A stretch of DNA of 63,533 nt, counting the filler, from Octopus bimaculoides (lineage: Eukaryota): assembly GCF_001194135.2 (NCBI RefSeq). It is 5 parts of 5 records of this genome, joined end to end, with 100 filler letters (N's around TTAATTAATTAA, not from the genome) between each part and the next. Parts side by side here need not be neighbours in the genome. Positions count along the whole stretch, not along the records: positions 44,582 to 56,633 come from NC_068997.1; 4 more parts are not named here. The stretch is one strand, 5' to 3'. Shown one piece after another: positions 42,131 to 57,649 of the stretch. Position 1 is the stretch's first letter. Each line of letters opens with the position of its first letter. Below the pieces are notes generated by a model that saw only the letters and a list, made by a program, of their open reading frames with translations, had not been told where the DNA came from and made no database searches. Position numbers and translations under genes: made by a program.

Positions 42131-44912
42131 TCACTAGGAGTGGACCGTCCCCTCCCCCCAGCTACGCAATTATTTCCATGGATATCATTCAGTTATATTC
42201 ACACATTAATATAATCAAATAGTTTACGTGGCTCTTAGATCTAAATACCAAAAGCTAAGTACTTAATGAGCTTCCTCGAATCTCGGAATCAATATTGTAA
42301 TACTTTTGCGCATAAAACCGTTTCTTCTGCCATGAATCTACTTAGCTGACGTGTCTAATTCCGGAACTTTGTGTAAAAAAAAAGACAAATAATTTATAAT
42401 TTCAAATGATTTAACTTCATCTTATTTATCAAACGGTACTGACAGGTTTATGTCTATAATATAATGATTCTGATTGTGACTTTGGTAAGTTTCACTTTTC
42501 ATTCCTTCGAGCTCAAGAAATCCGTACTTGACCTAGTATGTGTGTATGATCAGCTGATAGGCTGACTGGTAGACAAGAATCAGATGCAAGGTGATGTACC
42601 GAAATAACTTCGCGACTTTCAATCAAATATTTTAGACTGAGACTTGGGCATAGAAATGGCTAAAACTACAAGAAGTATAATGATTAAACCTGATCGGTAG
42701 GGTACTATCAATTTGCTAGAGGTTAAGGGACTAATCGATTGACTATTATCTGATATCAAAATTTTAAATCGATTCATCTCAGAATTAATGAATAAATAAA
42801 CAAAAAAATGAACAGATGCAAAAATGAAATAAAATATTCTTCACCAATATTTTCTTTATTTTCAGTTTTTAATTTTGTCTCACATCAAAATATTCAGACT
42901 GTCTTTTGAACTTATTCCTATTTTCTTGCTTCGTAACTGAGTTGCTATTTTTCTTCTTTTTATATTTATTTCTCTTCGTATTTTACTAATAAATAACCAA
43001 AAGAGGAAATGACGCATAAGACCTTTCAGATTTCGGTTTCTATTCCTTTGTTCAGAAATATTTTCGAAAAATCTCATAGAAAGAGGCAGTCAGCAACAAC
43101 CTAACTTTGATATAACATTCTCTTACTGTTTGCCAACATAACAATCTTGCTCCTGTTCTCCCCCACACCCAAACATCAATAAACAGCTGACTACATCAAA
43201 CCCTGAATAAATTTCTATCAAACACCACATTCATGAATTCGATCAATCATTTCGTATTCTAGGCACTAAGGTTGTTTGGTGGTGCTTCCAAAAACTCAAA
43301 GCCTATTTTCTATTTTAATTATTTTATTCACGCATAAAAGACTGTCCACAACATGATGGGGCTTTTGAATAGTGTTTTGACCTGATAAACATATTTTATA
43401 GATGTTTAGTAAACAGACAGAATCAGTAGCTACTGACATGATAGAGATATCAATAAGATAACCCGATAGACACCAGCAGTAAATTTGGACTAGAGAGACA
43501 GTTAGTAGGAGTTAATTAGTATCGTCTACAATAGACATGATCTATTTAGATAACTCTATGTTGACGTTATCTCAAGTAAAAGAGAGTAGATAGGGGAGAT
43601 AAATAAAGAAGAATATGAAGCGATGGTTTGTAGACGCTGAATAGGAAAACGCTGTAGATGCTGAGTAGACAACCTCGAGATATTGACTGCTTAAAGATAG
43701 ACTTTAGATAACTCCTAAAGTAATATTGCATATACATATTGACTAGAGGGTGACATGATCTAACGACAAATTCGGTAATACAATATCTTAACGAATTTTT
43801 CTGCTAAAAATTGACTCAATTAAATGGATTAAGCTTTTAACCAGATTCATAAAGGTTAGTTATATATTAGCCTAGAGATATTGCTTCTATAATGACTGGG
43901 CGCAAAGTTTGATGAGACAGTCTATGAATGCTAAGACAATTTGTAACAGTTGAATATATAGACACAAACACAACCAATAGGTATCATTTACAAAATATAA
44001 ACTATATGTTGACAGGAGATAAACAATATGTAAAAAAAAGTTGCCTAAAGAGAGACAGTTTTCAGACGTCAATTAGAGAAATTTCATCAAGAAAGTCTAC
44101 AAACCGGAGACGTCTATCCGGAAGCAAGAGCACACAAGACTATGATCGATCATGAATTTAATAAGATATTTTAGTATATGAATGATATAAATAGAATCTA
44201 CCTTATTAAAAAGTAGAAACCAATTGAAACTGGAGAGAAAAAGAGCAAACAAGAATGGGAAAAGAGGAAAAAATTGGGGAAAGAAAATCATAACACATTT
44301 TTCATGCTGATCTATTCAGATAAAATTGAATATTATTCTCATCTCTCTAGCTATTCACACACACACACACACACATAGTATATGTATGATACATATAGCA
44401 TATTTGCAATATGCGTATGCAATATATAACACCTTTAATACATATACATACATATGTATATATATATATATATATATATATNNNNNNNNNNNNNNNNNNN
44501 NNNNNNNNNNNNNNNNNNNNNNNNNTTAATTAATTAANNNNNNNNNNNNNNNNNNNNNNNNNNNNNNNNNNNNNNNNNNNNTTGCACGGGAAACCTGCCT
44601 TTTGTGGCGAATTTACCGATATTATCTAATACTATTTACGGCTTTACTTCGCCATTTTTTTTTGGTTTTGAGACTTGGAGTCTTCGAAGTCAATTTTGCA
44701 GACGATTTCAGAACGAAAGCCGGTCTCCATAGCAACATTGATTTCATTACCCTCCCTTCACCACGGCTTCATAAAGCAGGGAAGGCGGGGAGAGGCGTCA
44801 CACGAACAGGTGCAAGTGTACGCGTGAACCCTAACACCGTTGCCACCAGCAACAACAGCGATATCGTCGCAAAGGCTTCGGACCTCAAGGAAGAGAAACG
44901 CCAACACCACCA

Positions 44913-45113
44913 GACAGACAGACAGACATACAGACAGACAGAGACAGACAGACAGACAGAGACAGACAGACAGACAGATAGATAGACAGACAGACAGATA
45001 GACAGACAGACAGATAGATAGACAGAGACAGACAGACAGACAGATAGATAGACAGACAGACAAATAGACAGACAGAGACAGACAGACAGACAGATAGATA
45101 GACAGACAGACAG
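44913..45113 (+). repeat. (AGAC)n/(AGAT)n compound microsatellite
   Basis: Direct reading. Confidence 0.95.
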
Positions 45114-45120
45114 AATGTAC

Positions 45121-45690
45121 TTGGGGCTGAAACAACAAACCTGAAAACGTAAGTACGAAACAATGGCGACAAAAATGGCAACAGCATGCCTAGAGTCGCA
45201 AAAACATGCCCAAAGCCGCGACTACGTATTCCAAGCCGTAAATACCTGCCGATGCCCGTTTATACGAAACTGCGGCAGTATGTGTGTCGCTGCAGGTATA
45301 AGTACGTACTTGCGGCTGAAACAACAAACCTGAACACGTAAGTACGAAACAATAGCGACAAAAATAAGCTCCACAACGTAAATCTCTACCCGGCGACGCA
45401 ACACAATGCCTAGCGCCGGAAAAACGTGCCCAAACCCGCAAATACATCTTCCAAGCCATAAATACCAGCCGATGCCCGTTTATACGAAACTGCGGAAGTA
45501 TGTGCGTCGCTGCTGCTATAAGTACGTACTTGCGGCTGAAACAACAAACCTGAACACTTTAATACGAAGCAATGGCGACAAAACTAAGCTCCACAACGTA
45601 AATCTGTACCCGGCGATGCAACAGCATGCCTAGCGCCGGAAAAACGTGCCCAAAGCCGCAAATACATATTCCAAGCCATAAATACTAGCC
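45121..45690 (+). repeat. GC/CpG-rich tandem repeat, ~2.7 units (starts 45121, 45309, 45529; 188 and 220 bp)
   Basis: Each unit starts CTTG(G/C)GGCTGAAACAACAAACCTGAA; the complete units end ...TAAGTACGTA or its equivalent. Confidence 0.93.
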
Positions 45691-48600
45691 GAACGGTCAA
45701 AGGAACGAACGTAAGGTCGAACGTACGTAAGCACGTACGTACGAACGAACTATCTTACGTACGTACGTACATACGAACGGACGAACGAAGGAACTAGCAA
45801 ACTAACGTACGTACGTAGCTAAGTGCGCATGAACGAACGGTCGAACGAACGAATGTACGTACGTACGTACGTAAATAAGTACCTAAGTACGTTCGTACGA
45901 ATGAACAAACGAACGTACATACGTACGTACGTACGAACGAACGAACAAACTAACTAAAGAATGAACCAGCGAAAGAACTAACGTACGTACGTACGTATGA
46001 ACGACTGAGCGAGCGAACGAACGAACGTACGTACGTACGTATAAATGAACTAACGAACGTACGTACTTACGTATGAATGAACGAACGAATGAAAGATCGA
46101 ACGAAAGAAGGAACGAACGTACGTAGGTACGAAAACAACGAACAAACGAACAACGAACGAAATTACATATGTAAATACGTATGATCGATCGAATTAACGA
46201 ACAAACATACGTACGTAGGTACGAAAGAATAAGCGAACGAACGTACGTTTGTAAGTACGTACATGCGTACGTACAAACGAGCGAACGAACGAACGAAACA
46301 ACAAAACAACGAACAAACGAACGTACGTTCATACGTACGAATAACTCGTCCATTCGTTCTTTCGTTCGTATGTACGTAATTACGTTCGTTCGCTCGATCG
46401 TTCGTTCGTACTTACGGACTTACGTACGTACCTTCGTTCGTTCGTTCGATCGTTTGTACGTACGTACGTTTTTCGTTCGAACGTTCGTACATACGTACTT
46501 TCGTTCGTTCGTTTATTCGTACGTACGTACGTACATACATATGTACGTTCGGTCGTTCAGTCGTTCGTACGTACGTACATACGTTAGTTCATTCATTCGT
46601 ACGTACGTACGTTCTTTCTTTCTTTTGTTCGTTCGTACGTACCTACGTTCGGACATACGTTCGTTCGTTCGCTCGTTCGTTGGTACGTAGGTTCATCCGC
46701 ACGTTCGTTCGTACGTACATAAATACGTACGTACATTCGTTTGTTCATTCTTTCGTTCGTTTGTTCGTTCGTTCGTATGTACGTCCGTTCGTTGTATGTA
46801 CGTACATTCGTTCGATCGTTCTTAGGTACGGGCGTATGTACGCACATTCCTTCGTTCGCTCGATCGTACGTACGTACGTTCCTTCGTCTGTTCGTTCGAT
46901 CTTTCTTTTGTTCGTGTGTTCGTTCGTTCATTCGTACTTTCGATCGTTAGTTCATTCGTACGTATGAAAGTCCGTACAANNNNNNNNNNTGTTCGTTCGT
47001 ACGTACCTACGTTCGGACATACGTTCGTTCGTTCGCTCGTTCGTTGGTACGTAGGTTCATCCGCACGTTCGTTCGTACGTACATAAATACGTACGTACAT
47101 TCGTTTGTTCATTCTTTCGTTCGTTTGTTCGTTCGTTCGTATGTACGTCCGTTCGTTGTATGTACGTACATTCGTTCGATCGTTCTTAGGTACGGGCGTA
47201 TGTACGCACATTCCTTCGTTCGCTCGATCGTACGTACGTACGTTCCTTCGTCTGTTCGTTCGATCTTTCTTTTGTTCGTGTGTTCGTTCGTTCATTCGTA
47301 CTTTCGATCGTTAGTTCATTCGTACGTATGAAAGTCCGTACAAACGTACGTTCGTTTGTTCGTTCGTTCGCTCCTTCGTATGTACGTACGTACGTTCGTT
47401 CCTTCGTTAGTTTTTTCCTTCTTTCGTTTTTTCGTTAGTTCGTTCGTTCGTTGCTTCGTACGTATGTACGTCCGTTTGTTCATTCGTACGTACGTACTTA
47501 CGTTCGTTCGTTCGGTCGTTCATTCGTTCCTATGTACGTACGTACGATCGTTCGTTCGTTCGTACTTACGTACATTCGTTCGTTCGATCGTTTGTACGTA
47601 CGTACTTTCGTTCGTTCGTTTATTCGTACGTGTGTACGTACGTACATATGTACGTTCGGTCCTTAATTTCGTTCGTTCAGTCGTTCGTACGTACGTACGT
47701 ACATACGTTAGTTCATTCATTCGTACGTACGTACGTTCTTTCTTTCTTTTGTTCGTTCGTACGTACCTACGTTCGTTCGCTCGTTCGTGGGTACGTAGGT
47801 TCATCCGCACGTTCGTTCGTTCGTACGTACGTTCATTCGTTCGCTCGTTCGTATGTACGTCCGTTCGTTGTATGTACGTACATTCGTTCGATCGTTCATT
47901 CGTTCTTAGGTACGGACGTATGTACGCACATTCCTTCGTTCGCTCGATCGTACGTACGTTCCTTCGTCTGTTTGTTCGATCTTTCTTTTGTTCGTACGTA
48001 CGTTCGTTCAATCTTTCTTTTGTTCGTACGTACGTACGTACGTTCGTTCGATCTTTCTCTTGTTCGTACGTACGTACGTACGTTCTTTCGTTTGTTCGTG
48101 TTTTCGTTCTTACGTACGTACGTACTTTCGGTCGTTCGTTCGTACGTACGTTCGTTTGTTCAGTCGTTCGTTCGTTTGTTCGTTCGTACGTACGTACGTG
48201 CGTACGTTCTTTAGTTTGTTCGTTTGTCCGTTCGTTCGTACGTACATACTTACCTACTTACGTAAGTTTGTTCATTCGTTCGTTCGATCGTTCGTTCATT
48301 CGTACTTTCGATCGTTCTTTCGTTCATTCGTACGTATGAAAGTACGTACAAACGTACGTTCTTTTGTTCGTTGTTTCGTTCGTTCGTTCGCTCTTTCGTA
48401 CGTACGCACGTTCGTTCGTTCCTTCCTTCGTTAGTTTTTCCCTTCGTTCGTTTTTTCGTTAATTCGTTCTTTCGTTGCTTCGTACGTATGTACGTCCGTT
48501 TGTTCATTCGTACGTACGTATGTACATACGTACGTACGTACGATCGTTCTTTCGTACGTACTTACGTACGTTCGTTCGTACGTCCGTTCTTTCGTTCGTT

Positions 48601-50939
48601 CTTACGTTTGTACATGCGTACGTTCGTTCGTTGGTTCTTACGTACGCATGTTCGTTCGTTCGTTCTTTTGTTCCTTCGTTCGATCATTCCATCATTTGAT
48701 CCTTCTTCCGTTCGTTCGTTCGTTCCTACGTACGTACGTATGTTCGTTCGTTCATTCGTACGGGCGGTTGTTCGTACGTACGTACCTACGTTTCTTCTTG
48801 AATTCGTTTGTACGATAGTTCGTTCCTTGTTTCGCTCATTCGTTGTTTCTTACGTACGTACTTACGGGCGTACATACGTGCGTACGTTCGTTCCTACGTA
48901 CGTTAGTTCGTTCATTCATTAGTTCGTTCTTTCGCACGTACGTACGTTCGTTCGTACGTACGTACGTAATTACGTTCGTACTTACGTACGTACATACGTT
49001 TGTTCTTTCATTCGTTCGGAGTACTTACGTACGTACGTTCGTCTGTTCGCTCGTACCTTCATTTCGTTTCTTCCTTCGTTCGTTCCTTCGTACGTACGTA
49101 CTATCGTTCGTTCATTCATGTACGTACCTATCGTTCGTTCATTAGTTTGTTCGTTCCTTCGTTGGTACGTACGTACAGACGTATGTACGTTCGTTCTTAC
49201 GAACAAACGTACGTAAGTACGAAGGAACAAACGAACGTAGGTACGTACGTACGTTCCTTCATTTGATCGTATTTTCGTACGTTCGTTCATTCGTTCGTAC
49301 GTACGCACGCACGTACCTACGTTCGTTTGTTGCTTCGTACGTACGTACGTTCATTCGTTCGTTCTTAAGTTCGTTCATTCGTACGTTCGTTTCTGCATGC
49401 GTACGTTCGTTTGATATTTCTTACCTATGTATATACTTACTTACGTAAGTACCTTCGTTCCTACGTACGTACGTTCGTTTTTTCATTTGTTCCTTCGTTA
49501 GTTCGTACGTACGTACGTTCTTTCGTTTTCTCGATCGTTCTCTCGTTCGTTCGTCCGTTCTTTTGTTTCTTCGTTCGATCTTTCGCTCGCTCGTTCATTC
49601 ATTTGTTTGTTTCGTTCGATCATTTGTTCATACGTACGATCGTTCGTTCGTACGTACGTACGTACATTCGTACGTACGTACGTTCGTTCATTCATACATA
49701 TATACGTACGAACATACGTACGTTGGTTCATTCATACATATGTACGTACGAACTAACGAACGTACGTACGAACGAACGAACGTACGTACGTACGAACAAA
49801 CGAACGACCGAAAGAATGAATGTACGTAAGTACGTACGTACGAACGAACAAACGAACGAACGTACGTAAGTAGGTACGTACGTACGAACCAACGAACGAA
49901 TGAACGAAAGAACGAACGATCGAAAGAACGAACAAAAGAACGAACGTACGTCCGATCGAACGTACGAAACTAACGAAGGAACAAACGAACGAACGAAACA
50001 AACAAACGAACGAACGATGGACCGAACGAACGAACGGAAGAAAGAACGGACGAACGAAAGAACAAACGAACGAAAGAATGAATGAACGAACGAACGAAAG
50101 AACGATCAAACGTACGTACGTACGTAAGCACATATGTACGTAGGTACGTACATTCATTCGTTCGTACAAAATAGCGAACGAATGAACAAACTAACTAACG
50201 AACGAACGAACAAATTAACGAACGAACGAAAGGACGACCGAACGCACGTACGTACGTACGAACGAACGAATGGATGTACGTACGAAAGAACGAACGAACG
50301 AACGGAAGAAAGAACGGACGAACGAAAGAACAAACGAACGAAAGAATGAATGAACGAACGAACGAAAGAACGATCAAACGTACGTACGTACGTAAGCACA
50401 TATGTACGTAGGTACGTACATTCATTCGTTCGTACAAAATAGCGAACGAATGAACAAACTAACTAACGAACGAACGAACAAATTAACGAAAGGACGACCG
50501 AACGCACGTACGTACGTACGAACGAACGAATGGATGTACGTACGAAAGAACGAACGAACGAACAAACAAACGAAAGAACGAACGAATAAAAGAACGAAAG
50601 TACGTACGAACAAACGAACGAATGGACGGAAGAACAAACGAACGAACGAAACACACAAACGAACGTACGTACGTATGAACGACCGAACGAACGAAACAAA
50701 CGAAAGGATGAAAGAACGAACGAACGATAGAACGAACGAACGTACGTACATCCGTACGTACGAACAATAGAACGAACGATCAAACGTACGTTCGTACGTA
50801 AGTACATAAGTACGTCGGTACGTACGAACGAATGAACGTACGTACGTACCTACGTTTCTTCGTGAATTCGTTTGTACGATAGTTCGTTCCTTCTTTCGTT
50901 CATTCGTTCGTTCGTTGTTTCTTACGTACGTACATACGT
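45691..50939. repeat. 5.25-kb complex tetranucleotide satellite of ACGT/ACGA (TCGT) variants
   Basis: Almost entirely 4-mers related to ACGT/TCGT, with orientation switches near 46325, 49745 and 50845. Confidence 0.97.
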
Positions 50940-50959
50940 GCACAAATTCGGTGTCCAAA

Positions 50960-51720
50960 CATTCGCACAGTGGCCAGAAAGTCGGGGATCACACATATAC
51001 ACACCAGAAAAAAGTTGGACTTAGGAAGCATCAGATGTGTGTGCAAGAGAGACAACTGTGCTGGTAGTATGGTCATGTGTTGTGAATGGATGAGGACAGC
51101 TGTGTGAAAAAGTGTCACTTCCTAGCAGTAGAGGGAACCTGTGGAAGAGCTAGCCCCAGGAAGACTTGGGATGAAGTGGTGAAGCATGACCATCGAACAT
51201 TGGGCCTCACTGAGGCAACAACAAATGACAAGTGGATCTTTGGAGATATGCTGTGCTTGAGAAGAACCGGCAAGCCAAGTGAGACCATGGCCTCTGCCAG
51301 TGCAGCATAACCGGCCCATTTAAGAGTAGCCTTCAATCATTGGGCAATAAACTGCACTTGCGAAGACCTGTTGAGGCAAGTGGTGGCTAACTGGCACCTG
51401 TGCCAGTGGTACGTTAACAGCACCATTCAAGCATGATCGTTGCCATTGCTGCCCGACTGGCTCCTGTGCCGGTGCCTCATAAAAAGCACTATTCAAGCGT
51501 GGTCAATGCAAGTACCACCTGACTGGCCCTTGTGTCGGTGGCATGTAAAAAGCACCCACTACACTCTCGGAGTGGTTGGTGTTAGGAAGGGCATCCAACT
51601 GTAGAAACTTTGCCAGATCAGATTGGAGCCTGGTGAAGCCTTCTAGCTCGCCAGCCATCAGTCAAATTATCCGATCCATGCCTGCATGGAAAGCAGATGT
51701 TAAACGATGATGATGATGAC
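50960..51720 (+). mobile_element. RTE-clade LINE 3' end with internally repetitive 3' UTR and (GAT)n tail
   Basis: ...YGHVL*MDEDSCVKKCHFLAVEGTCGRASPRKTWDEVVKHD matches the W.GHV.RM...G.R..GRP...W motif; ends GTTAAACGATGATGATGA. Confidence 0.85.
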
Positions 51721-54700
51721 ATACATACATGCAAATAACCCTTAATAGATGAAGTTTACTTCAACATTGATAATATACCTTATCAGATGACATTAAAGGT
51801 TATATATGATGACACTAAAGACAGTTTAATATTAAATATATCATCTTTTAAAATCTAGATGTTGTACAGAACAGACATAATCCAGTTTATATAAATCTAT
51901 AAGAGAATTATGGTGAAGGTTTTCCTCTAAAACTGTCTGTTTCACTGGACTGTTGAATTTTATTGAATAACCTGAGAAATCTTGCCTGGACCAATTAGTT
52001 AGCAAGGTTGTGCATGAAAAAAGAGATTTAGATTCCTGTAGGTAGCAATTTTTTTTCTTTTTATATATGAGTGCAGTCTGTTATGTATATAGATTGAACA
52101 ACACTGATAGCTTCCTGGGTCAATGAAGACTTTTATGAGTGAACATGGTAGATGGACACTCTTCAGCATGCGTCAACATCAATACAAAAGTGCATAATCC
52201 TTCTTATTTTTTTCCAACTTATCCTATTCAAAAAAATACATAGCAGAACTGTCAAATTTTATGAACAGCACGTTTCACAGTTAAATCACAGTAAGGAACA
52301 ATGGGTGTTAGTGAGATGAAAAGATTAGGAATGGCTAAACGTATATAGTGAGAAAAAGAAAATCCCATATCTCTATGGGATGTATTAAATAGAGAGCCAT
52401 AGTGGAAACTTGGAACAAAAATAATATATTAGTTTTTGAAAACACAATTAGAAAATCCAGTGCTGACCAGCTTAAAATAAATGCCTTTACTGGAGATCAG
52501 AGTTAAATAATACTGATTACATTAGGCTATTGATACAGGTCCATGCATCAATAGCCTAGTGTGCAACAGTGCTTCAACGGTTAGCTTAGAAATACACCGT
52601 CTGCTTTATTAAGGGTTGCCTTAGGAGTATGGGTGGCTTCTATCTCTTAAAAATCTAATTCTTCGAGTTTTCCAAATATAACAAGACTTCATCATTCATT
52701 TTATGATTAATGTCAGGTCCTTTTACAAAGTTGAGTTTTACGATAGCTACATTTGAATGTCTACTTTAATATTATGAAAAAGAAAAAATAAGGATTTGAA
52801 GTAAAAAGAAACAAATATCAATTTCAAAATGATTGTTTTCTTTATTCCACAAATTTATACATAAGACATCTGATCTGATAATTTTGGCTCAGAAAAAGTT
52901 GTTATATATGGATTGCAATGTATCACAGATATGCTGTGTAAGATCACAGTTGAAGTTATGTTACAGATGACCTGCTACTTCTGCAACCAGCATATAAAAA
53001 CAATAACTACCGCATCTATTGTAATGACAGTCACGTTTAGATAAAAACTCTATGAAAATGGATGAAATAGTCATTAGGTTTTTAAAAATATTGATTATAT
53101 TACAAGTTATTGTTTTCTCTGGAAAACACAAGGTAACACTCACATAAACGTTACAAATACACCCTGCAACATAATGCATGTATTTAACCTCTTCCATGAT
53201 CAGTAAGGTACAAGAATATCCTGTCTGTCAAATATAACTCAACATATGTTACAAGCTCAGGAAGGGTATACTTATTGCACAGAAATTAACACTTTCAGAC
53301 AATATTTTTAAATGAGTAACTTGTACATTTACATTAGAGTGCTTTATACATATGTTCACACACATCAATGGATGATATTGCAATGCATATATAATAAAGC
53401 ATGCACAACACAAAAATGATTGGAATGTTGTACCAGGAGATAACGTTATAAAATATATTTCATATTACAAAACATGATTTGATATTTAATCATCCATTAT
53501 TTGAATATGAATGGTTTTGTAAATTAAATGATAACAATATATATATATGTTACTATCAACATGAATTTTAACTTGGTCAACACGTTTCATCCATCCTTAT
53601 TTCAAAAAAAAAAAACAAACTCATTTTATGAACCTGACACTAAGTTCTAAGTTAAGTAGAATTTTAGTTTATCAAAACAAGCAACTTTCAATTCAGTTAT
53701 CTTACAGTTAAATATGAATAAGAATAATAATAAAGCTGAAATAAAGAACAAGTATATAATGTGTGTGGTTAATTGACAAAATGAAAAAAATGACCATACC
53801 CTATTAAAACAACATATGATTTCATATCAGGAATCTTGCAAAACAAATATATATATATGTCTTTGCTCCATCAAATAAAGAAGAAAAAAACATGCATATC
53901 TATTACTTCCTGATTTGATGTGAATCCCTTAATTCTTAATTTTTATAAGAAATTATAGAAGTTTATAGATGTTTAAGTCTTTAATCTGCAACAAAGCATG
54001 AATTTTAGTTCTTGTAAATATTGCCATGTTTAATTTCATGCTCTTAAAAGTGAATGTATCTTATATATTCTGAACCAAAAAGATACTTGACACTTTTTGA
54101 CAATACTTTATAAATTGGCTGACATAACTTATCCAAAGGATTGCTTTCATATTAAACGATACAGCTCTAACAATCAACATGTGTGTGTGCGCTCATGTGT
54201 GTGTGTATGTGCACACACAAACAAGTTATAGCAAATTTCTAGTTGATCTAATACAGTAATTTTAAAAGTACAAAGCAAATAATAGGAGGACATGTTATGT
54301 CCAATACAGACAGGTCTATAAATGAGTTACTGAATATAGATTTAGAAGTCAAAAATACTTTCCGATATCATTTAACCCAACATAAGAAGACCAACTTTTT
54401 TGATGAGTCTATAACATAAGGCTGCAAAACATGGCTTTGATTTGAAATATTCAAATTAGATATAGTTATCATTTAAGAAAGTAACAATTACATAAAGGTC
54501 TACTTACGTAAGGATAGTCTGGGACTATTTTTAATGTTACATCTGTTACAAAACACAATTATCTATAAGCTCAAAGAAGGAAAACTGGGGTCAAACTGAC
54601 AGAAATTGAAAAGGATGTCACAATACAAAAAATTGAAGCCCTAAATCTTTTAACTTGCACATTCATTTAATTCAATTATAGTTTTTCAGTATGTTACTTC

Positions 54701-54811
54701 AGCAGCAAATGTTTACACAAAGTAACTCTGACAGTGATTTGGATTTTCTTACAAACAGTTTCTCGGCCGCAAATGATTTGATACAATCTCTGTTGTTATT
54801 CTGTTCCCTTT

Positions 54812-55016
54812 TCAAAAGCTGAAATGGCTACTTCCTCTTAAAGCTTCAAGGTCTAGAATATATGCAGAATTAGACCCATCTTCAAGCTGAGTGATGAAAT
54901 CTTTCAGTTCCAGTTCCTTTCCAAGCTGATACTGAAGACGTATATCTTTGCAGTGTGTTAAAAGTTTCTTTATGTTATCTAAACACTGAGGAGGTTTTTG
55001 TGTCATCTGTTTGTAC
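54812..55016 (-). CDS. Probable terminal coding exon of an unidentified host gene (YKQMTQKPPQCLDNIKKLLTHCKDIRLQYQLGKELELKDFITQLEDGSNSAYILDLEALRGSSHFSF*)
   Basis: Strong acceptor (T)n-ATACAG at 55017, 67 open complex codons to TGA, then ~3 kb of largely repeat-free AT-rich sequence resembling a 3' UTR. Confidence 0.55.
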
Positions 55017-55651
55017 CTGTATAAAAAAAAAAAAATAAATAAAATTTGCATAATTTTAAAATTCTAACTGGTCTTTCAAAAGTATTACAAATACATTAAA
55101 TCTCTCATTCCACTTTTCACAACCCAACAACCGTCTAATATTCAGATTATTCTGGCAAATTTGATACTTATTAATTCTGTTTTGAATTAATCATGCATTA
55201 CCTTGTAATTTTGAGATTTCAATGATGATGTGATTGTATATTTTTAGAATAACATTGTAGGGTAGATGTAAGAGAGCATCGTTTGACAGTTTGAACATTA
55301 CAACAGGTAAAATATTTGGGCTGGAGGTGGCTGGTTGAAATGCGAAAGGTTTGAAAAGAAAAAAAAAATGTTACATGCTAACTATCTGGTCAAATTTTGT
55401 TCTTAAGAAATAACCATTAAGACACCTCGCTCTTTGTCATTTTCTAATAATAAGAACTGCTTGCAGATAATACAGCTATATTGCTTCATTATCTTATAGC
55501 TCCTTTGCACAAATCCTTACAGTACTTTCTCGTAATGACTTTACAAGATGTCAACATTACTACTTCCTTCATCCACTTCTCCAGTAGTCGTAACGAGAGT
55601 TGCATGGGTCTTAATAAATCACCATCAAACGGCAGAAACACGAGGCCTTAC

Positions 55652-55677
55652 CCTGGAGGAAAGACAGTTTGGGACAT
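55652..55677 (-). CDS. Candidate upstream exon (MSQTVFPPG) of the same gene
   Basis: GG|GTAAGG donor at 55651 is phase-compatible with the 55016 exon, giving a 635-nt intron. The 5' boundary is uncertain; the frame is open back to ~55746. Confidence 0.35.
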
Positions 55678-55867
55678 GACGTTGTTAAAGCAATAACCTT
55701 GGTAACCTCTTGAATCAAAGCAATACCCAAGCTGCCTTTCAAAAAGTTATATTTTTGCGCTGTTTACAGTTTCCGTGTACAAGTGCTTTCAAGTGAAGCT
55801 GGGCCAAACCGCTAAATCACCAGGCCGATTTGATTGAAATTTCAGATATGCATTAGGTATGTTCTGC

Positions 55868-55973
55868 GAGATCAGATTGGAGCCTGGTGCAGCCATCTGG
55901 TTCGTCAGTCCTCAGTCAAATCGTCCAACCCATGCTAGCATGGAAAGCGGACGTTAAAAGATGATAATGACGA
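55868..55973 (+). mobile_element. Short RTE-type 3' tail fragment
   Basis: Matches 51615-51720 (AGATCAGATTGGAGCCTGGTG...GCATGGAAAGC.GA.GTTAAA). Confidence 0.85.
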
Positions 55974-57649
55974 TTTCTGCTGCCTTCTATATGATTGATT
56001 ACCTCAAGTATGTTTAATCATAACATTAAAGTGACCAATTCAATGGAAAGGATACCAATTTACAAAACGCATGGCGGCTACGTGTTGCATGAACCTCTTG
56101 AGGGCGACATTCCGACTGTTGACCATTAACCTTCTTCAACTGGGAGCAATCTATCACTCAAGCGGTTCCCTCTTAGGAAACGCTGAAATTGTTCAACTCG
56201 TTCTCTTCCTATACATTTATCTGTGTGCTTTATTCTATGGCTTCATTCGCAAGTGTATGGTTCTAATCTGCACTGGGCTGAGGAGTAAGGTGTTGAAACC
56301 AAGCAACATATCATTTCATACAACAAATGTAATCATAACGACGATCAATGAAACAAATGCATTAAAATAATTACACGAAGAAGTAACTATCTCTTACACA
56401 CCATTACAATTTACATAAAATAACAACACTTAAACAGTCGATAAAACTAAATACATACATCCTCTCTCCCACCATTATATTTTACACCATTACATTTTAC
56501 ATCAAATACAAACTATTCTAAAGCAACAGGTCATTTGACACAACATCTTCATGAGACACGTGTTCTGATTCATCTATTCAGCACCACTACAGTCTTGCCC
56601 ATCTGACATATGGTGAGTAGATGCTATTGTCGTNNNNNNNNNNNNNNNNNNNNNNNNNNNNNNNNNNNNNNNNNNNNTTAATTAATTAANNNNNNNNNNN
56701 NNNNNNNNNNNNNNNNNNNNNNNNNNNNNNNNNATACATTTACTTACATATTCATTTTATGCAATTAAATTAGAATATTTATAATCTTATTAAGGGTAAT
56801 GATTGCAAACTTTCCATGTTGGTGTTTGCATCATTATGACAATGGGTAGTATTAAAGATAGTTAAACATTAACTCGTTTAGTTTAGTGACCATAAAAGGC
56901 AATATTTGGCTTAATGTTTATTTAAATATTTAATAAATTAAATAATACGAACTCATTTAATCAGTGTAATAATATTTACACATCTAGTTGTTGGAATGTC
57001 AAATATATTAAATTTTAATCAATGTTAAGATATTTATTACATTTCGCATTAAAAATTAACATTTAAGTTAGCGCTAAAGTATTTATTGTCTGCAATATTA
57101 TATTACAATATTTGTTTTCTCTCTATCTATCTCTCTATCTCTCTCTCGATCTTTTCTGTCTGTCGGTTAGTCTGTCTATTTACCTATGTCTTTATTTATA
57201 TATGTATGTATACAGCTATGAATGTGTGTGTGTGTATTTATAAATCTATCTGCCTTTCTCTCTCCAAGTAGACAGATAGATAAATAAGTTACATAAATAT
57301 ATAAAAACATGTGTTATCCTTCAATCGTTTCAGGTGTTGGACTGCGGCCTTGGTGGAGTACCAGCTTAAAGGGTCTTAGTTGAATGGATCGAGAGTTCTA
57401 ATTGCTTTTTAAGGATTGGTTCCTATACTTTCGGTCTCATTTGTCGAACCACGTGCACGAATTATTTATTTATAGTGAGCATATTTATGTGTGCTGCAGC
57501 TAATATAGGTGTGCTGCATATTAGGTCGGTCTCTCTGTTTTCCGAACAGGTACATTTATATACATTACATATATACATATATTTATATATACATCCATAC
57601 ATACACACATCACACACACACACACACACGCACACATACACACACTCAA

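Follow-up and report, generated by a model that had tools for sequence, protein, structure and literature searches.

A 4.9-kb CpG-dense TTCG/TACG array in the Octopus bimaculoides genome, probably an overgrown compound microsatellite

The stretch of DNA analysed here, referred to as the window, comprises 63,533 nucleotides from Octopus bimaculoides (RefSeq assembly GCF_001194135.2) in five parts joined by filler, and its piece from 44582 to 56633 (NC_068997.1) contains a long tandem array of the tetranucleotide TWCG, where W is A or T. This array is, in our assessment, a non-coding, degenerate compound tetranucleotide array in which (TTCG)n is interleaved with (TACG)n; it would have grown by slippage, unequal exchange and fold-back switching, probably from a transposon-microsatellite seed, and would now be eroding towards A/T. 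We give this reading a probability of roughly 0.6. In essence, the array looks like an overgrown compound microsatellite that is unusual in composition, and not like a new kind of element. It was seen at this one locus only, which is the scope of the description that follows.

The array boundaries were set by Viterbi segmentation of the piece, using a hidden Markov model (HMM) with eight phase and orientation states plus background. The array and its internal features are as follows.

45690-50941, both orientations: whole (TWCG)n array; HMM segmentation, Tandem Repeats Finder (TRF) period 4 and CpG statistics.
45690-46341, minus strand: block 1, A-rich on the plus strand (CGAA/CGTA, with TWCG on the minus strand); HMM orientation R, AT skew +0.39 to +0.46.
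46342-49747, plus strand: block 2, T-rich on the plus strand (TTCG/TACG); HMM orientation F, AT skew about -0.5.
49748-50836, minus strand: block 3, A-rich on the plus strand; HMM, AT skew +0.55 to +0.65.
50837-50941, plus strand: block 4, short T-rich end block; HMM, BLAST and switch-point hairpin.
46270-46400, unstranded: first strand-switch region, centred on the perfect palindrome GAACGTACGTTC near 46330; hairpin -33.3 kcal/mol, z = -4.43.
49640-49803, unstranded: palindrome at the switch from T-rich to A-rich, 164 bp, 80% self-complementary; self-inverted BLAST match, hairpin -54.8 kcal/mol, z = -6.35.
46980-47343, unstranded: gap artefact, 10 Ns (46980-46989) followed by 354 bp (46990-47343) that duplicate 46626-46979, with 354/354 identity at an offset of 364.
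50023-50563, unstranded: segment duplicated in tandem at a spacing of about 268 bp (50023-50303 against 50291-50563); 97% by BLAST, with all of the difference in gap columns.

As assembled, the array measures 5,252 bp, which becomes about 4,888 bp, or about 1,200 units, once a duplicated contig overlap is removed. TRF assigns it a period of 4 with 0% indels across 46383-49693 (827 copies). Read in register, the unit is T at the first position in 90% of cases, W at the second in 95%, C at the third in 83% and G at the fourth in 75%, with TTCG making up 30% and TACG 23% of the units (53% jointly). The 5,239 non-N bases of the assembled array hold 800 CpG (0.153 per bp, one per 6.5 bp), giving an observed/expected ratio (o/e) of 3.26, and GpC stands at 0.22 by the same measure. 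Correcting for the overlap leaves 747 CpG over 4,888 bp, where 1,000 composition-matched shuffles gave 228 +/- 11 (z = 45), and the densest 100-bp interval holds 19. GC content is 0.433. A preliminary description of this DNA had reported a CpG-dense array of more than 5 kb at 45691-50939, which these results bear out. It had also put the density at up to one CpG per 4 bp, a figure that applies inside perfect runs only and not to the array as a whole, and had called the surrounding DNA AT-rich. The latter is true of the right flank, which is AT-rich and CpG-poor (GC 0.30-0.35, CpG o/e 0.27-0.42; 30% GC and o/e 0.27 in its unique portion), but the left flank is neither, having a GC of 0.47 and a CpG o/e of 1.06 to about 1.4.

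The array is interrupted by a scaffold gap, the only run of Ns in the piece. The sequences at 46626-46979 and 46990-47343 are the same, and their identity stops exactly at the Ns. An exact 354-bp copy ending at a scaffold gap indicates that two overlapping contig ends were butted together without being merged, and the assembly here carries a false 364-bp duplication. The two array sides of the gap are therefore continuous by overlap, with the real sequence most likely running from 46979 directly into 47344; the tetranucleotide phase is preserved across the gap because 364 is a multiple of 4. Since this is the single gap in the piece, each contig holds over 1 kb of array in continuity with non-repeat flank. 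TRF also proposed a 364-bp 'higher-order repeat', which we rejected, as the gap artefact accounts for its first two copies and the remainder lies at background similarity.

The orientation of the units changes along the array, dividing it into four blocks. Block 1 begins directly after a truncated third copy of a 220-bp repeat, while block 2 holds the gap together with a short internal flip near 49200-49245. Each of the three main strand flips lies within a TACG-type tract, at the centre of an imperfect palindrome, and the pivot of the 49640-49803 palindrome is made up of TACG/TACA/TATA units. When DNA hairpin folding was scored against 200 shuffles, none of the 200 matched the hairpin at the first or the second switch, and two of the 200 matched that of the third, in the tract around 50836 (z = -2.56). 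The larger palindrome arms are 70-83% complementary, where fold-back read artefacts would be expected to be near-perfect; the flips are therefore read as old events. The preliminary description had proposed that the array can form cruciforms or Z-DNA. The switch-point palindromes that would favour such structures are real but imperfect (z from -2.6 to -6.4), and the predicted potential is limited, with perfect (ACGT)n runs of at most 16 bp and a longest alternating purine-pyrimidine run of 34 bp; alternating runs of at least 12 bp number 74 and total 1,221 bp.

The two unit types are mixed in runs, whose mean length is 3.4 units for the TACG type and 5.0 for the TTCG type, roughly double that of a random order, and with only a weak periodicity of 40-44 bp. 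Self-comparison by BLAST, performed after the gap artefact had been collapsed, also shows segments repeated at a larger scale. Identity is 81% between 46442-46930 and 47548-48010, 87% between 46920-47496 and 48288-48520, and 96% between 48773-48844 and 50837-50908. The closest non-artefact pair in the array is the 268-bp tandem duplication, whose copies have no mismatch over 273 aligned bases and differ by one 8-bp (two-unit) indel. Paralogous segments differ chiefly by gaps, with 78 gap columns and 20 mismatches in the largest pair, and indels in the array are multiples of the unit.

Departures from the consensus were counted as single-step variants, masking the gap artefact and the substitution-free 268-bp copy, which left 425 variants distributed as follows.

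C>T: 88
G>A: 87
G>T: 84
G>C: 41
C>A: 26
C>G: 11
T>A: 33
T>C: 20
T>G: 14
W>C or W>G: 21

Transitions at CpG form the largest class, with 175 of 425 (41%) against 18% if all steps were equally likely. The units TACA, TATG, TTCA and TTTG, read in register, account for 202 of 1,299 units. The ACAT, ATGT, TCAT and TTGT variants singled out in the preliminary description are indeed CG>CA/TG changes, comprising all four possible CpG transitions, and the CG>TG/CA excess, whose absence was to have counted against its reading, is present. Per site, CpG transitions in the consensus count are about 3.5-4 times as frequent as transitions at the T and W positions. A further 34 substitutions between paralogous segments divide into 9 CpG transitions, 9 other transitions and 16 transversions, and with CpG making up about 30% of the sites, this corresponds to a per-site excess of about 2.3 fold. 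Changes from GC to AT outnumber the reverse by 285 to 55, every GC>AT class being raised. G>T, the source of TTCT and TACT units, matches G>A in frequency, whereas the complementary C>A is rare, and this asymmetry tracks unit orientation in both the T-rich and the A-rich blocks.

The variant spectrum bears most directly on the proposal that the array is one member of a satellite family whose cytosines are, or once were, methylated in the germ line; the TG and CA units would then be deamination scars, and the array would mark heterochromatic chromatin. The CpG-transition excess speaks for it, as does the symmetry of C>T (88) and G>A (87), which is what deamination on both strands predicts, and the unique DNA around the array is strongly CpG-depleted (o/e 0.27). 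In methylated genomes, CpG>TpG/CpA changes exceed other substitutions about 10 fold per site; the excess here is about 2-4 fold, and only about 2.3 fold among real paralog substitutions. Furthermore, deamination does not yield the G>T (84) and G>C (41) changes seen at the same site, and CG is intact in 53% of units. Because the per-site excess is modest, G>T equals G>A and the lean towards A/T is general, past methylation is possible but not required, and ordinary AT-biased mutation in a genome of 30-35% GC fits the variant spectrum as well as methyl-C deamination does. The persistence of CpG would not by itself be evidence against methylation, as slippage and duplication can re-amplify intact units faster than they erode. 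Bisulfite data from O. bimaculoides place methylation at fewer than 10% of CpGs, favouring gene bodies and leaving transposons and repeats nearly unmethylated, with satellites as the one class of repeat that is somewhat higher (PMC9476566). That last point lends the proposal some support, as does the precedent of another mollusc, Spisula, with its methylated SSUsat repeat (PMC5537241). In copies of a short interspersed nuclear element (SINE), taken as a genome yardstick of CpG decay, CpG transitions run at 0.088 per site against 0.05, a figure drawn from only 3-5 copies, too small a sample to be informative; the copy at 51396-51719 in the window carries CG>CA and CG>TG changes relative to the other copies. 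On balance, we regard a methylated satellite, in the sense of the preliminary description, as unlikely.

The gap raises the separate question of whether the array, or much of its length or internal arrangement, is a product of assembly from collapsed, expanded or chimeric repeat-rich reads. The exact 354-bp overlap shows that the assembler did fail here, the contig junction falls within the array itself, and the 268-bp duplication is free of substitutions. The same exact overlap favours true adjacency of the two contigs, though, and each of these runs more than 1 kb of array continuously into non-repeat flank. In addition, the variants are structured in a manner that is neither noise-like nor perfectly mirrored, as seen in the duplications at 81-96% and the palindrome arms at 70-83%, and we consider an assembly origin improbable. 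Less probable again is a functional protein-binding platform, in which either ACGT cores of basic leucine zipper (bZIP) type, or the docking of CXXC or MBD proteins on what resembles a CpG island, would act on a neighbouring gene. The array does offer 273 ACGT cores, as well as 747 CpG in 4.9 kb, a density above that of vertebrate CpG islands. The preliminary description had accordingly suggested dense bZIP-type cores, a suggestion that their context does not support, as almost all lie in TACGTA (177) or GTACGTAC. Among animal bZIP sites, the array contains no cAMP response element (CRE; TGACGTCA), no half-CRE and no CACGTG (E/G-box), and just two PAR/NFIL3-type sites (TTACGTAA). A GC of 43% is below the CpG-island criterion, the order of units is variable, as expected without constraint, and no recognisable gene lies in 5.7 kb of right flank, leaving such a platform very improbable.

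A coding role for the array was considered and rejected. Open reading frames (ORFs) reach 327 codons, in several frames and on both strands, but only because stop codons are lacking from perfect units. Used as a protein query, the 327-aa ORF matched nothing but unrelated ORFs of low complexity from (TTCA/TTCG)n microsatellites, at no more than 59% identity and over partial length. The one TACG/TTCG-like protein match (P0004, L001 1170-1500) comes from a GC-rich contig of an unrelated eukaryote, where it consists of a (GTACGTTC)n octamer repeat; as this octamer was called within a protein-coding gene, gene callers evidently read through stop-free repeats. Scans of the whole piece against Rfam, tRNA models and Pfam gave no match, and telomeric repeats are absent from it. 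On the minus strand, 54812-55020 resembles a terminal exon, being an ORF that ends in a stop and is preceded by a poly-pyrimidine tract and AG; a search of 5.8 billion proteins gave no homologue and Pfam no family, and the candidate was set aside. No gene is therefore identified near the array.

The flanking DNA ties the array to an octopod genome. For comparison, we used a 20-kb O. vulgaris chromosome segment (GCA_951406725.2), referred to as L002, which surrounds the protein matched by the LINE tail described below. The flanking features are as follows.

44911-45114, plus strand: (ACAG/ATAG)n, equivalent to (GACA/GATA)n, of Bkm type, about 53 units in 204 bp; TRF period 4, 53 copies.
45112-45692, plus strand: 220-bp tandem repeat, 2.6 copies at 83-92% identity; TRF period 220, GC 47%, CpG o/e 1.37.
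50942-51005, unstranded: unassigned 64-bp spacer separating the array end from the fragment that follows; no palindrome.
51006-51505, unstranded: decayed 3' tail of a long interspersed nuclear element (LINE), with frameshifts and stops; motifs YGHV..MDEDS..PRKTWDEVV..DLWRYAV.
51396-51719 and 55863-55977, unstranded: SINE-like element with a (GAT)n end, present twice; O. vulgaris copies at L002 4173-4493, 6003-6295 and 12595-12650.
55140-55352, unstranded: unclassified dispersed repeat, matching the opposite strand of L002 12025-12238 at 75% identity.

Three of these elements, namely the LINE tail, the SINE and the third, unclassified repeat, have copies in the O. vulgaris segment that are 73-82% identical. 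The right-hand contig contains 3.95 kb of array together with such LINE and SINE copies, and this physical linkage to octopod repeats places the array in an octopod genome. The preliminary description had allowed that the array might be a contaminant, and the LINE and SINE families shared with O. vulgaris rule this out. Read through its lesions, the LINE tail has as its sole protein match a 'Hypothetical predicted protein [Octopus vulgaris]' at 75% identity, which is evidently itself a transposon fragment annotated as a gene. Further out in the AT-rich flank, a short (TG)n followed by (CA)n at 54180-54222 forms a small imperfect palindrome.

The left side bears on where the array came from. 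From left to right, the locus consists of (ACAG/ATAG)n, the 220-bp repeats, the ACGA/ACGT array, the 64-bp spacer and the LINE fragment. The 220-bp repeat abuts the array directly, its third copy being truncated at the array start, and it has no match in the O. vulgaris segment. Within the repeat are GTACGTAC and ACGTAAGTACGAAAC motifs that resemble array units. This layout recalls the pearl and DTC84 elements, in which up to about five core repeats are linked at one end to a tetranucleotide microsatellite (PMC3879986), and the Helentron-derived Cg_HINE of oyster, in which mostly 4-nt microsatellites sit beside tandem repeats with a 60-bp right flank (PMC7492417). At the octopus locus, core repeats are likewise joined at one end to a tetranucleotide microsatellite. 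Helitron-class elements make up 0.7-3.7% and simple repeats 8.7-14.7% of octopus genomes (PMC6279123). By analogy, the seed of the array was most likely the microsatellite of a module of the pearl/DTC84/HINE type.

Several points weigh against the reading we prefer. The case for a transposon-module origin is one of architectural resemblance. No inverted match of at least 9 bp was found between 44582-45180 and 50930-51120, with the left flank ending at the piece edge, 44582. No hairpin or 3' palindrome occurs in 50936-51060, the left flank offers only a weak 9-nt pair, and neither subterminal inverted repeats (subTIRs) nor a target-site signature was found. As these terminal hallmarks were not found, a transposon module is a likely origin for the seed and not an established membership for the locus. 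The array is also about 100 times longer than any described HINE microsatellite, which needs extra explanation, and slippage combined with neutral decay does not explain the strand-asymmetric G>T at the fourth position.

With these points in view, the history of a compound microsatellite that grew to its present size may be outlined as follows. In intergenic or intronic octopod DNA, the starting point would be an ACGN tetranucleotide microsatellite adjoining a few 220-bp core repeats in tandem. Replication slippage would lengthen runs of each sub-unit and create indels in multiples of 4, while unequal exchange or segmental duplication would copy pieces of 70-500 bp within the array. At the self-complementary (TACG)n tracts, fold-back or template switching could flip adjacent TTCG runs to CGAA, leaving behind imperfect palindromes. 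The CpG density would then be a property of the unit itself, and we infer that CpG persists either because turnover of the array outpaces point mutation, or because most octopus intergenic repeats are unmethylated, or both. Point mutation would meanwhile push the composition of the array towards A/T, CpG transitions contributing more than any other class. None of these steps implies a sequence-specific function.

It is the scale of the array that appears to be unusual. A scan of 241 million metagenome records with the 24-mer TTCGTTCGTTCGTACGTACGTACG returned 26 contigs, each with a tract of 24-130 bp and with flanks unrelated to the window. As the motif elsewhere extends over just 24-130 bp, its kilobase scale is what sets the octopus locus apart. 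Two near-identical contigs from this set, Ga0126339 and Ga0126338 (L011 and L018; positions 1-130), start with (TTCG)n(TACG)n of at least 130 bp in AT-rich, eukaryote-like DNA, with variant units like those of the array; the tract is cut by the contig end and may be longer. No TWCG array is present in the 20-kb O. vulgaris segment, and we found no description of a TTCG/TACG array in the literature, for cephalopods or otherwise. The ten leading simple repeats of Octopus minor include no TTCG/TACG motif (PMC6279123), and the commonest tetranucleotide repeat other than those of TA type in that species is (TATG)n, with 89,927 loci covering 9.6 Mb (PMC6279123, Table S13). (TATG)n is one CpG transition away from (TACG)n.

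As a case study, the locus offers a clean instance of a microsatellite enlarged to the dimensions of a satellite, in which flips centred on palindromes point to fold-back template switching at a self-complementary unit. It also flags an assembly error, the false 364-bp duplication, and suggests a possible link between the microsatellite modules of transposons and the birth of satellites in cephalopods. A bolder proposal, which we hold to be improbable, is that TWCG arrays are genome-wide, octopod-specific, CpG-saturated simple satellites derived from Helentron-type modules, and that they could be the octopus 'satellite' fraction with raised methylation. If true, such arrays would form a distinct chromatin compartment, and would serve as a natural experiment on the handling of very dense CpG in AT-rich DNA by a sparsely methylating invertebrate. 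The finding would carry greater weight if arrays proved to be numerous, positioned or selectively methylated, giving a handle on the sparse methylation machinery of cephalopods at extreme CpG density.

Among known systems, the pearl, DTC84 and Cg_HINE elements share with the octopus locus core repeats of about 160-220 bp adjoining an ACGN/ACNG tetranucleotide tract, and the published motifs include ACGA and ACAG (PMC3879986, PMC7492417). The octopus layout is the same in order and orientation, but the locus has tetranucleotide tracts on both sides of its core repeats, and the published microsatellites have 2-13 units where the array has about 1,200. The array also has something in common with the SSUsat satellite of the bivalve Spisula subtruncata (PMC5537241), in that both are tandem repeats of molluscs, both exceed the host genome in G+C and CpG content, and both are candidates for methylation above background. 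SSUsat differs in its long monomer, its share of at least 1.3% of the genome, its measured methylation and its known chromosomal location, which are all features of SSUsat (PMC5537241).

By its head-to-tail unit of four bp, the array falls within the 1-6-bp definition of a microsatellite, while at 4,888 bp it lies outside the short-tract size of tens to a few hundred bp. Its length and internal segmental structure, with duplications of 72-507 bp and orientation blocks, are those of a satellite. Compound tetranucleotide microsatellites, written (AACG)n.(ACGT)n in simple sequence repeat (SSR) nomenclature, share its 4-bp units, the block-wise mixing of two units and the slippage-type indels. The array is 40-200 times longer than these (4.9 kb against 24-130 bp) and adds segmental duplications and orientation flips, which are satellite features. 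CpG islands, as defined by Gardiner-Garden and Frommer, exceed 200 bp in length, 0.6 in o/e and 50% in G+C. The array surpasses the first two values by far (4.9 kb, 3.26), but because its GC is 43% it is not a CpG island by the usual criteria, and it differs further in that it is tandemly repeated and is associated with neither a promoter nor a gene. Kilobase-scale simple-sequence satellites of animals, such as the Bkm-type (GATA/GACA)n arrays, are built from units of 4-7 bp without CpG and evolve by slippage and unequal exchange. The octopus array resembles them in its kilobase scale, its short units and its probable turnover by those two processes, and a (GACA/GATA)n tract lies 0.6 kb from it; its own unit, by contrast, contains CpG and is self-complementary, which makes it compositionally rare.

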